A stretch of 62,641 nt of DNA, the filler included, from Choristocarpus tenellus KU-1152 (Eukaryota > Protista > Phaeophyceae): the NCBI GenBank assembly GCA_964200185.2. It is 12 parts of 12 records of this genome, joined end to end, with 100 filler letters (N's around TTAATTAATTAA, not from the genome) between each part and the next. Parts side by side here need not be neighbours in the genome. Positions count along the whole stretch, not along the records: positions 57,859 to 62,641 come from CAXNAD020013075.1; 11 more parts are not named here. One strand, written 5' to 3'. Made by a program: the position numbers and the translations under genes. This document shows, piece after piece, positions 57,859 to 62,641 of this stretch. The notes below the pieces were generated by a model. That model was not told where the DNA came from. It saw nothing but the letters and a program-made list of their open reading frames with translations, and did no database searches. Position 1 is the stretch's first letter, and every line of letters starts with the position of its first letter.

Positions 57859-58076
57859 GGTGGGGGGGGTGGGGGGGGGGTCTTCACCAAGCGTCCATTT
57901 GGACCAACACCAGGAAAAGTGCACTTTCATGATCCATCCGACATATGCAACCAAATCACCCAAAAATCGCGACATGAAAAATTTAGCTCCAAATGGACAG
58001 CCACCACCCCCCCAGGTACTTTGAGTCAGGGTCAAAAACGGACGCCGGCACCCCCCCCCCCCAGATACTTTGACCC
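57859..58076 (-). mobile_element. MITE family B, nearly full
   Basis: Reverse complement of 26363-26570, including both modules. Confidence 0.9.
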
Positions 58077-59255
58077 GGTTGGAAGTATAGGTTGCCGGTG
58101 ATGTGTTCTTTTGCGCTGGAATCCTGTACTAGATAGTATCCCCCATAGATTAATTAGAGGGTTATGGATCTGAATGTATTCTCCAAAAGGAGTATGCATT
58201 TACTAGAAGAGTCCTTGTTTCCCTGTCCAGGACATTGATAAGGCTGAGGAAGATGTCATAGAGATCACCAAGCTGCTTTTGACCTCCTAGGGCAGAAGCT
58301 CTCAATCTGGAGAGAGTGGTCAAGGAAAAGGATACATTACTGGATGTATACAAAACGGATTTGCAGGTGTGTTGCTCAAGTCACATGATGACTCATCAGC
58401 TATGTCTTGCGTTGTCTATTGCCCCCCTTCTTTAGAAACTCAATATGAGGATAGCAGAAGACAATACGCCTACGGCATGTGGTATACTTTATGGAGCTGA
58501 TGCCCAACCTTTGGTTCGTCATAGTTCTACAATTGAATAAAATATATTATCTCCATGCTGAAGAAAGCCACATGGTGGTACTGTTTGTGCCCTCAACTTA
58601 GCGTCCACACCTATGTGCTACTGATAATCATCTGAACTTTCTCCCCGTTGGATTGGCAGCGAGCAATTAAAGCATTTGAGGACATCAAACTTGTCTTCAG
58701 AAAGGAGTATGATGCTATCAAGGACCGCTGCACAGAGTTGAAAGCAATGCACACTGAAAAGGCAAAGGAGCTTCAGAGGGCTGAGCAATGCAAGATGGAA
58801 CTGATGGTGAGCTTGGTGGCATATCATTTAATCTTCAATTATCTAGATTATATTAGACATCCCCAGCTGACATTCTGCACTATTCTACAACATAACAACA
58901 TCCAGGACATTCGTTTGAGTAATGTGTTTCTATCGAGACAACAAGCGGAATAAAGTATGTGTCCTCTTGTTTCGTCTTGTACCAAACCACATACTACTGA
59001 AGTGTATGGTATAGGTACAACAATGTACTCTGAATGCCTTCTTTGCTTCTCTGCTTCTAGTAACAAGTGTATCCCTTCCCATCTCCACTCTTGTGGTGCT
59101 TTTAAGCTGAGGAGGCATACAAGACAATCATCTCATGTAAATGAACGACACAACACATTTGCAAACTCATCCAGTGACTCTTCCACTCCCCTCATCCCTC
59201 TCCATCTCCTACCTTCTTCTCTATCCTGTTTCCAGGAAGCGTTGGAAGATCGAAT

Positions 59256-59514
59256 GAGTCAAAGTATCTTAGAGGGTAGAGCCGCGTCCATTTGGGAACC
59301 AAAATCCAATGTTGCAATTTTGGTGTTATTTGGACTATCATGTTTGTCAGGAGATGTTAATATCCTTGTTCTGGACACTCCTTTTCATAACTTACACATT
59401 TTGCCCACTCCGAAACATTCTGGAGTAGATAAAATGTTGTTAAAAATCCGTGAGAAGTCAAGCCCCAAATGGACAAACAGGGTAAAACCCGTACCCTCTA
59501 AGATACTTTCACTC
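59256..59514 (-). mobile_element. MITE family A inside a putative exon
   Basis: Both TIRs present; flanks AAT/ATT (imperfect 3-bp TSD). Confidence 0.92.
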
Positions 59515-59910
59515 ATTCCCAGAGGTCTGTGGTCCCGAACTCCCCAGGTGAGTGTTGCCCCAAGGTCAATATCATCTCATAGATTGTACTTTGTCTGGTG
59601 CTGGGTTTTCTAGACCACTAAAATATCACTGTAAGCCCTAACATCATCTTGTTCCCCTGCCCACTGCCGTGTCGCACGTGCTTCCTGTTCCGTCTTTCCC
59701 CATGCTCATTATTGTCCGCCCTTTCAGGTCAAACGGTCTATACAACCTCTACCCACCAGGTTACAAGTCAAAGACACCACCCACCACTAACCGTAATAAT
59801 GGCGAGACCTTCACGGAGGGTGTGATTGCATGCCAAAACGCACCATTTTTCACAGGCAATACCGCCACAGCATCTGGGTTCATGTTCACTGCTGGGTCAT
59901 CTACACAGTC

Positions 59911-60170
59911 AAGCCAAAGTATCTTAGAGGGTAGAGCCGCATCCATTTGGGGGTCAAAATCCAATGTTGTAATTTCGATGTAATTTTGGCTATCATGTTT
60001 GTTAGGGAGTGTCAATATCCTTGTTCCGGACACACCTTTTCATGACGTATGCATTTTACCTACTCCGAAAATATTTTGGAGTGGGAAAATGTCATAAAAA
60101 ACCCCGAGGGAAGCCAAGCCCCAAATGGACAAACAGGACAAAACTCGTACCCTCTAAGATACTTTCACTC
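59911..60170 (-). mobile_element. MITE family A inside a putative terminal exon
   Basis: AAGCCAAAGTATCTTAGAGGG...GATACTTTCACTC; 4-bp TSD AGTC. Confidence 0.92.
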
Positions 60171-61635
60171 AGTCCACCTTTCCCACAACAAGGTCCAACA
60201 TGGCATCTTCCGACTACAATTTTGATTTTGGGGTTTCCGAATCCAAAAACTCAGAATTAATTCTCCACAGCCAAGGCTACTGAGTCCGTTTTCACCTTCA
60301 ATTTTGAGGTGCCCAATTCCACCATGAAGAACCCCTTCCTCAATGTGGGCAAGGCTCCTTCCGCGTTTGATTTGGACTGAAGTGTCAGTGAGCACAAAGC
60401 AGAGGACCACCCCCTTTATGATGAATAAGCCAGCTGCAGCTGAATTGGTTTAGGTGTTGTACAGGAATGAGTGCTGGGTGTCTCTCAGCCTGCCCCTCCA
60501 GCTTGTAATGATTGATTCTGGTTTCCTACACTTCCACACCACATGGAACCTGCCTACACTACTACCAATACTTTGCCGTTGAATTCCATACGTATATATT
60601 TGATGGAATGAGTTGTTTGTGTTGGTAGCCTATGAGATTAGGGCGTGTTGAAGGGGTCGTTCTTGCAAGGAAAAAGTAGTGAAGAGAGTTCTACAGGTGG
60701 TTTGGGTTTGGAGATTGTGCGTCATTTCCTCTTGGGGTGGTGTTTGGAGTCAGAGCACGTACCAAGACTTGTGAATGGAAAAGATATATGCATGTCGATG
60801 TGTATCTGGGGCAAGAGTTGTACAGCAAAAGTACACCACAATGTTTTGGCGTCAAATTGAAGTATGTTAACAAGTATGTACGTTACTTACTCTATGTTAG
60901 GATATGAATGGTTATTGCTCAGTTGGTGGCAATTGGGAGAAAGAAGGGAATGTATTGCACCAGCGGGCTCTGTTTGCAATGGTCTCTTGTTTGTGAACAA
61001 GGACTGTTTGTTCTCTTTGATATTATTGGTTGGCAGTAACCTGTGGGTTTGACTGGGTGAGGTGAATGGTGTGTTTCTGTTGTTGTATAAAAGTGGTGGG
61101 TGCAACTGCTGTATGTACTTCTAAATGATTTATCCTTTGTCTCATGGGTAGCACAAGGTCCTCATGGAGGAATATCGTCATTCTTGGTGGAGGATATTTC
61201 ATTCTGCTCTATGATGCGAAAGGTGCTTGTGATGTCACAGAAGTGAGCTGGATGACTGTTACCACAAATCACATAGCTAGGCTTGGTAGGAGCTTAAATC
61301 GTCTCATATGACTCTTGAATACTGTTGACAGTACTTGAATTGAATTGTGTCATTGTTGGTAAATGTCTTGTGTGTCGTGCTTGAGTCAGGCAAACGGAGT
61401 GTGATTTGGCTGCAGCCTACTTGACTGTTTGATGCGTGCTGCTGCCTGTGCACAACACACTGCTGGCCTACATCACAACTCTACCTATTTGCGTCATCAT
61501 CGGCACAGCAATGGACTATCCGTTGACATCGGTTAAGGTAGAATTTGAAGCAATGGCCCATTTGTCATATTGGTCTTGTTGTTGAGTCAGTCTCGTGGGT
61601 GACCTGAAGATATTCTGGCTTGAAGGTACACACTC

Positions 61636-61687
61636 ACCCCTGGTCAAAAACGGACGCCGGCACCCCCCCCCCCAGATATTTTGAGCC
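61636..61687 (-). mobile_element. Solo outer module of family B (~50 bp)
   Basis: GGTCAAAAACGGACGCCGGCACCCCCCCCCCCAGATATTTTGAGCC; candidate TSD ACTC (61632-35 and 61688-91). Confidence 0.75.
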
Positions 61688-62527
61688 ACTCATTGAGTAT
61701 GTCCTTAGGGAGTGGAACTACTTTCACAGTTGAACTGAGCGTGTTGAAGTGTGTCTCCATGTTTGGGTTCATTGCCAAAGAGAGGCATTGTGTACTCACA
61801 CGGGTTTTGTTAGCAGCAGCATCTGCTCTCCTCACGGAGTTTTGTTTTGATTTATTGTTGTTGTTTGGTTGTGTGCTCCGCCATGTATGTTGTGCACCCC
61901 ATCACCGCTGTAGACTAAATATATATTTATGTGAGGATTAGTATCGTATAGCTGCTCCTCTGCCTAGAATTAGATGGAACAGGCAGTGTGCATTGTCCAT
62001 CTATTGCCGTGCATGCTCCCTTTGGGTAATACTCGTACCTATATGAGCAGAACGGCCTCAAAACTACATAGAACTTCGATATTCTGACTTTTAACATAAT
62101 CCTTGTGATAATATACAAAGTATATCTTGCATACTCGAAGGAGAAAATATGGTACACATCGTCGTGTTCAGATCGAATATCCTCTATACACCATTAAATT
62201 TTTCGTCTTTAGCACATGGATTGGCGACTGGATTGATCTCAGCGTTTGGTCATTGTTATACTATTAGCAGACATCAACCACGCTGTACCAGGGCTGGTCA
62301 CGGTACTATTAATTATTACTGCGGCACTCATGAGTATCGGTATTTGTTCGATTTTTTTCTGTCGTGTGATATACCGCAGGAGGTTATCCACTGTAATCAC
62401 TAACGTACAGTAGACAAAGATATTTCATATTTATGACAAGTGTTACTTTTACAGTAGTTCTTGTGACATTGAATTGGCTTCACCCTGACAAATGTACAAA
62501 ATGTCAGACAGAATAATAATATACGTA

Positions 62528-62596
62528 GACCCAAAGTATCTGGGGGTGGGGGGGGGTCTTCACCAAAGCGTCCATTTGGACCAACACCAGGAAAAG
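62528..62596 (-). mobile_element. MITE family B end
   Basis: GACCCAAAGTATCTGGGGG...GCGTCCATTTGGACCAACACCAGGAAAA. Confidence 0.85.
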
Positions 62597-62641
62597 GAGC
62601 CAGAGTATCTTAGAGGGTAGAGCCGCGTCCATTTGGGGGTC
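62597..62641 (-). mobile_element. MITE family A end, apparently inserted in a family B copy
   Basis: GAGCCAGAGTATCTTAGAGGGTAGAGCCGCG directly after family B sequence CCAGGAAAAG. Confidence 0.8.

Follow-up and report, generated by a model that had tools for sequence, protein, structure and literature searches.

Insertions of a miniature inverted-repeat element into exon sequence of an orphan gene of Choristocarpus tenellus, examined as candidate introners

Does a short transposable element that sits twice within the coding exons of one gene create introns there, or has it interrupted a gene that is being lost? The question is raised by a locus of Choristocarpus tenellus KU-1152 (Phaeophyceae; GCA_964200185.2). 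The window, that is the whole stretch of DNA analysed, is 62,641 nt long and joins twelve parts of the genome with filler; the locus lies in its last part, at 57859-62641 (CAXNAD020013075.1), a 4.8-kb piece of eukaryotic DNA with about 44% G+C to which all element counts below refer. An initial annotation proposed that the element, a miniature inverted-repeat transposable element (MITE) called MITE-A, may be an introner whose inverted ends carry splice signals that always preserve the reading frame of the host. With moderate confidence we favour another reading, in which these are ordinary MITE insertions in exon sequence of a decaying or disabled orphan gene. In its favour are a frame rule that holds in one of the two copies, weak splice sites, the crowding of MITEs at the locus, an independent lesion in the gene and the lack of detectable relatives of the gene.

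Both full MITE-A copies lie inside putative exons, as the initial annotation had it, and their coordinates, the acceptor ending at 59235 and the GTGAGT donor from 59548 are as it gave them (Table 1). Exons were called as open frames with canonical splice signals on the plus strand; they were searched singly, and joins between them were translated only as a check of frame. Without copy 1, exon E3 is 53 nt long. Once copy 2 and one AGTC are taken out (264 nt, a multiple of 3), exon E4 becomes a single open frame of 97 codons (P ~0.01 by shuffling). An older intron fits into neither exon, and the false positive of a MITE that landed in an older intron is thus excluded. Introners must not be secondary insertions of that kind, and by this test neither copy is one. 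The predicted product consists of a coiled coil and, after it, a low-complexity tail that contains FxF motifs, and by the searches described below the gene is an orphan. Exon E2, within the coiled coil, would have an open frame by chance with P ~0.04.

MITE-A has the usual marks of a MITE, being small (259-260 bp), bounded by inverted ends and present three times in 4.8 kb. Its terminal inverted repeats are 23 nt long. Copies 1 and 2 are identical in 221 of 262 aligned columns (84%), with 5 gap events, and the element ends are far better kept than the interiors. Dating the insertions by the 16% divergence between copies was considered and rejected, as the ends are better conserved and the divergence may largely predate insertion; the insertions may be young. 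Each full copy is predicted to fold as one long hairpin (-96 and -97 kcal/mol, z ~-7.5). A second family, MITE-B, has an uninterrupted stretch at 57865-57925 that can be used as the empty site for copy 3; it sets the first base of MITE-A at GAG. No transposase was recognised for MITE-A when the translated element was compared with the protein collection by word search. On the favoured reading MITE-A is an ordinary non-autonomous cut-and-paste DNA transposon of about 260 bp with 23-nt ends, a single hairpin and, where it is visible, a 4-bp target duplication, and two copies of it have inserted into exon sequence of this coiled-coil and FxF-tail gene.

The case for an introner was in part arithmetical. 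Just as had been described, the consensus end has GT at positions 3, 9 and 21, and its only AG is 12 nt from the far end. Splicing between them, with a 4-bp duplication, would leave 2, 8 or 20 nt plus 12 plus 4, that is a scar of 18, 24 or 36 nt, and given the duplication the sum is correct. Copy 2 behaves accordingly: joining GT 59919 to AG 60158 regains the frame as far as TGA 60281-83, GT 59931 with the same AG is also in frame, and the GC at 59913 is in register too. The register argument fails when a second copy is held to the same rule. In copy 1 none of the three element GTs is in frame with the element AG (59502), and the rule that splicing is always in frame fails. The junction that had been proposed for copy 1, GT 59258 to AG 59522, does yield EALEDRMKVCGPELP in the phase that the next exon needs; it relies on a flanking CAG at 59522, 8 nt outside the element. 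For copy 2, no element donor is in frame with the first flanking AG (60172), which falls within the duplication. In-frame use of the element AG is confined to copy 2, and that of the first flank AG to copy 1. Each acceptor rule thus saves one copy, and a different one, as chance would. Across all GT-AG pairs near the ends, 17 of 49 and 14 of 48 are in frame, the third expected by chance. A fixed relation between element end and splice site, giving an unchanged or in-frame mRNA, was tested for and did not hold.

Other parts of the proposed device stood only in part. The GT at position 3 is present in three of the five ends, and the left ends of copies 2 and 3 read GC. The AG 12 nt from the end is present, but the pyrimidine tract said to accompany it lies downstream of the AG, on the side of the would-be exon. 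Symmetry of the ends does not make the scar free of stops in every phase and orientation, as the reverse end reads GAG TGA and use of the GT at position 21 leaves TAG in one frame.

The target duplication had been taken as 4 bp throughout. This is borne out at copy 2, with AGTC on both sides. At copy 1 the flanks are GAAT and ATTC, with nothing beyond AT in common; when several possible boundaries were tried, the flanks had no common 3-mer and AT was the sole direct repeat. As to a duplication of fixed length, there are thus 4 bp at copy 2 and at best AT at copy 1, copy 3 being cut off. The ancestral sequence previously deduced for copy 1, EDRFPEVCGPELPR, requires removal of 3 nt, not 4. The simplest empty site for this copy, GATCGAATTCCC, was also tried and rejected, giving an E3 of 51 nt that is out of frame with E4. 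Judged from its flanks, the insertion history of copy 1 appears not to be a simple cut-and-paste event with a 4-bp duplication. The same flanks lengthen the inverted repeat of copy 1 to 27 nt, and together they make up a split GAATTC (59249-59521).

The candidate splice sites of the element are weaker than those of the host. Compared with MAG/GTRAGT (the slash marks the exon end), the element donors match at 3, 6 and 5 of 9 positions and all lack G at +5, whereas the three native donors match at 8, 7 and 9 of 9 and all have it. The element AG is an AAG with 11 pyrimidines in the 20 nt upstream, against 14-18 of 20 for native acceptors. In the predicted fold the candidate donors and acceptor also pair with each other in a hairpin stem of 18 to 26 bp. 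The testable evidence leans against a built-in intron design, and on the favoured reading the occurrence of GT and AG in the ends is incidental and no splice device.

Table 1. Features of the piece at 57859-62641, in positions of the window. A slash within a donor marks the exon end.
Feature	Position	Strand	Details
MITE-B copy, left end cut by piece edge	57859-58027		Begins in poly-G run; right end ...CAGGTACTTTGAGTC
Mini element, 49 bp	58028-58076		MITE-B-type right end; 32 nt identical to 61642-61673
Exon E1	58291-58366	+	…AEALNLERVVKEKDTLLDVYKTDLQ; acceptor TAG 58288-90
Exon E2	58660-58806	+	49 codons, coiled coil; phase 0 to phase 0; donor ATG/GTGAGC
Exon E3, left part	59236-59255	+	EALEDR-; acceptor ending 59235
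MITE-A copy 1	59256-59514	+	259 bp; inverted ends 22/23; flanks GAAT and ATTC
Exon E3, right part	59515-59547	+	-FPEVCGPELPR; phase 2 end; donor CAG/GTGAGT (59548)
Exon E4, before MITE-A copy 2	59728-59910	+	Last 4 nt AGTC (59907-10), one copy of the target duplication
MITE-A copy 2	59911-60170	+	260 bp; inverted ends 20/23; 4-bp duplication AGTC (59907-10 and 60171-74)
Exon E4, after MITE-A copy 2	60171-60283	+	STFPTTRSNMASSDYNFDFGVSES…GY; stop TGA 60281-83; first 4 nt are the second AGTC
Relic coding sequence, +1 frame	60284-60380	+	…ATESVFTFNFEVPNS…SAFDLD; stop 60378-80; carries the second 30-nt unit
Second mini element	61640-61687		MITE-B-type right end
MITE-B copy, left end	62530-62596		GACCCAAAGTATCTGGGGG…; broken by MITE-A copy 3
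MITE-A copy 3, left 45 nt only	62597-62641	+	Cut by piece edge; nested in MITE-B

The gene itself carries a lesion apart from the elements. A 30-nt unit encoding YNFDFGVSES (60215-44) recurs as FTFNFEVPNS (60291-320), with 20 of 30 nt identical, a level reached in 2 of 300 shuffles. The units are offset by 76 nt (1 mod 3), which is not a multiple of 3 and thus marks a frameshift between them. The second unit and the open frame that runs on to the stop at 60378-80 are in the +1 frame, past TGA 60281-83; this relic frame ends ...NPFLNVGKAPSAFDLD. From the duplicated units, a frameshift between 60245 and 60290 that is unrelated to the MITEs is well supported. The TGA at which the copy 2 junction regains frame would probably itself be a product of this frameshift. 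A second frameshift near 58288, which had been put forward as a sign of a pseudogene, is possible but optional. It belongs to an alternative E1 in which the exon starts at 58231, and an acceptor at TAG 58288-90 allows a start at 58291 instead; both acceptors have 14 of 20 pyrimidines. Candidate disabling lesions beyond the insertions are in sum the frameshift near the C-terminus and the optional one near 58288, with the other frames open. Most likely the gene is no longer under full constraint, and it would be either a dying copy or a disabled allele. We infer that it has lost its function and that the copies are not cleanly spliced.

Several observations weigh against this reading. Leaving aside the two elements and the shift near 60245-60290, all exon frames are open, which fits a gene that is still used or was only recently disabled; open frames here are, on the other hand, not strong evidence of constraint. 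The frameshift near 58288 vanishes when the exon starts at 58291, and the C-terminal one could be tolerated by the gene or be an assembly error. Both genic copies lie in the same orientation, with their first base on host codon position 3, for which chance gives about 1 in 6. Finally, among shuffled ends with at least one GT and at least one CT, 0.7% have at least three GT-CT pairs all in frame, a figure obtained post hoc.

In the introner proposal the MITE-A family would be adapted to be spliced from any coding exon, in either orientation. Its left end would supply the in-phase GTs and its right end either an AG or a branch point and pyrimidine run, and the scar of 18-36 nt would be in frame. 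We judge this unlikely. In its favour, the sums work out for a 4-bp duplication, shuffled ends seldom have three in-phase GTs, copy 2 follows the rule, both copies share orientation and phase, and both interrupt exons that leave no space for an older intron. Inverted ends and 4-bp duplications are documented among introners, as are families that add few codons (PMC9860276; bioRxiv 10.1101/2020.10.14.339549). Set against this are the failure of the rule in copy 1, which has no duplication and an element AG out of frame, the absence of the GT at position 3 from two of the five ends, donors and an acceptor weaker than native ones and paired in a long stem, and stops in the scar in some phases (GAG TGA in reverse, TAG with the GT at position 21). 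Copy 3 lies in another MITE outside any gene, and the host has an independent frameshift. By the published definition, an introner family comprises similar introns from four or more unrelated genes, alike up to the exon-intron boundaries (PMC12130899), and here one gene is observed. In its widest form the proposal would make MITE-A, and perhaps MITE-B, an introner family with a symmetric end carrying several donors in one codon phase and an acceptor or branch site, such that insertion in either orientation would give an intron and leave 6-12 codons in frame as a scar; copy 1 would be older, its flank having changed since. This, too, we hold to be improbable.

Splicing would not require adaptation of the family. 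The gene may still be used, with both copies removed wholly or partly through cryptic sites (59258, 59264 or 59276 with 59522; 59919 or 59931 with 60158). In-frame, stop-free pairs are indeed available for both copies, frames elsewhere are open, and the right end of copy 1 provides a run rich in pyrimidines and, about 20 nt before the flanking CAG at 59522, a CTAAG. The donors are nevertheless weak, the sites lie in a stem, the acceptor logic differs between copies and the independent frameshift applies here as well, and we consider such ad hoc splicing rather unlikely. There is precedent for it in maize, where Ds, dSpm and Mu insertions in exons (Wessler and colleagues) are removed through chance donor and acceptor sites in their ends, often leaving extra codons. 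Rather than fixed introns, those cases are mutant alleles of recent origin that have leaky function and use several alternative junctions. MITE-A resembles them as a DNA transposon in an exon; its removal from transcripts is hypothetical.

Could copy 1 instead be retained in the mRNA and translated as a new C-terminal part? It is free of stops in the host frame over its 259 nt (P ~0.003 by shuffling for that frame; ~0.01 for any forward frame). Read-through, however, would put E3 in phase 0, so that E4 is out of frame and meets a stop after 20 codons, with the FxF tail lost. In that element frame copy 2 is broken by three stops. The word search of the protein collection, made with the read-through of E3 and element (104 amino acids), gave no match to the translated element and no candidate for other translated copies, which also counts against a coding role. 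Exonisation of copy 1 is very improbable.

Searches for relatives of the gene and of the element covered several collections. Six exon pieces gave only sub-threshold noise against Pfam, and exon E2 had no match at E up to 0.001 in an exhaustive phmmer (HMMER) search of 1.84 billion representatives. In the ESM Atlas, E2 found generic coiled-coil look-alikes and E4 found none. For further MITE-A copies, an 18-nt invariant core was sought in metagenome contigs, where it gave 14 matches, all without flanking similarity; it had no match in viral contigs and three chance matches in prokaryote genomes. No mention of the core string was found in a literature search. Scans of the piece for Rfam families, tRNAs and tandem repeats returned nothing relevant, with no Rfam RNA gene and no tRNA.

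A wrong exon model, or a collapsed or chimeric assembly of repeats, would make the whole question an artefact, and this we regard as quite unlikely. The contig ends in repeats on both sides and the gene is without relatives in these searches; an alternative acceptor at 59524 would place copy 1 within an intron, still in frame with E4. Yet no acceptor in the piece is stronger than the one at 59235 (18 of 20 pyrimidines), and the EALEDR that follows it prolongs the coiled coil; the acceptor at 59524, a GAG, comes immediately after a better CAG. When copy 2 is cut out exactly, a long frame reappears, as would not happen with an assembly artefact.

Compared with the introners of algae and dinoflagellates (Micromonas, Aureococcus, Symbiodiniaceae and Polarella; PMC9860276, PMC12130899, bioRxiv 10.1101/2020.10.14.339549), MITE-A is similarly short and non-autonomous; its ends are inverted and one copy shows a 4-bp duplication. 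The element occurs within coding exons, GT and AG stand close to its ends, and the scar could be in frame, comparable to the 12 nt added by an Aureococcus family. In the introner families described, by contrast, a splice site is found at the very end of the element or within the duplication, and the candidate sites of MITE-A are 2-20 and 12 nt inside its ends. Its genic copies also number just two, both in one gene, with one copy non-genic and splicing hypothetical, and one of the genic copies has no duplication and breaks the frame rule.

The resemblance to ordinary MITEs, whether Stowaway-like, Tourist-like or others, extends to size, inverted ends, hairpin, lack of coding capacity, clustering, nesting and the sharing of ends between two families. 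Most MITEs reside in introns, untranslated regions and flanks. A pair of copies in the exons of one gene departs from this pattern, and is unusual except where the gene is dead or splicing removes the copies.

Sola2 had been suggested as the superfamily. We take its ends to be of the form GAG…CTC, which the MITE-A ends resemble, and one MITE-A copy has the 4-bp duplication of Sola2. The label rests on that one duplication, and 4-bp duplications also occur in other superfamilies. No Sola2-type transposase or autonomous partner was present in the piece or in the collections searched, and the literature searched gave no assignment to a superfamily by diagnostic ends. The superfamily is best left open.

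Should splicing prove true, MITE-A would be one more introner family beside the 1,093 listed for 201 species (PMC12130899), and a slightly uncommon one in that its splice sites would lie within a symmetric inverted end and leave a scar of several codons. The interest would be moderate, and greater should the host lineage have no known introners. As it stands, the locus is a caution: GT and AG in the element ends, together with free choice of sites, give an in-frame junction for most insertions.

MITE pieces occur at six further places in the 4.8 kb, one of them nested in another MITE. MITE-A and MITE-B have in common a terminal CAAAGTATCT and a subterminal GTCCATTTGG, arranged in inverted pairs. 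On account of this common terminus and motif, one unseen transposase probably moves both families. MITE-B has long poly-G and poly-C runs just inside its ends. The two mini elements (47 to 49 bp), with their 32-nt identical core, resemble internally deleted elements or solo right ends. At its start the contig is within MITE-B, and at its end within a MITE-A that is itself nested in MITE-B, so the assembly broke at repeats. Breaks within these repeats at both edges suggest that both families are probably present in high copy number in this genome.

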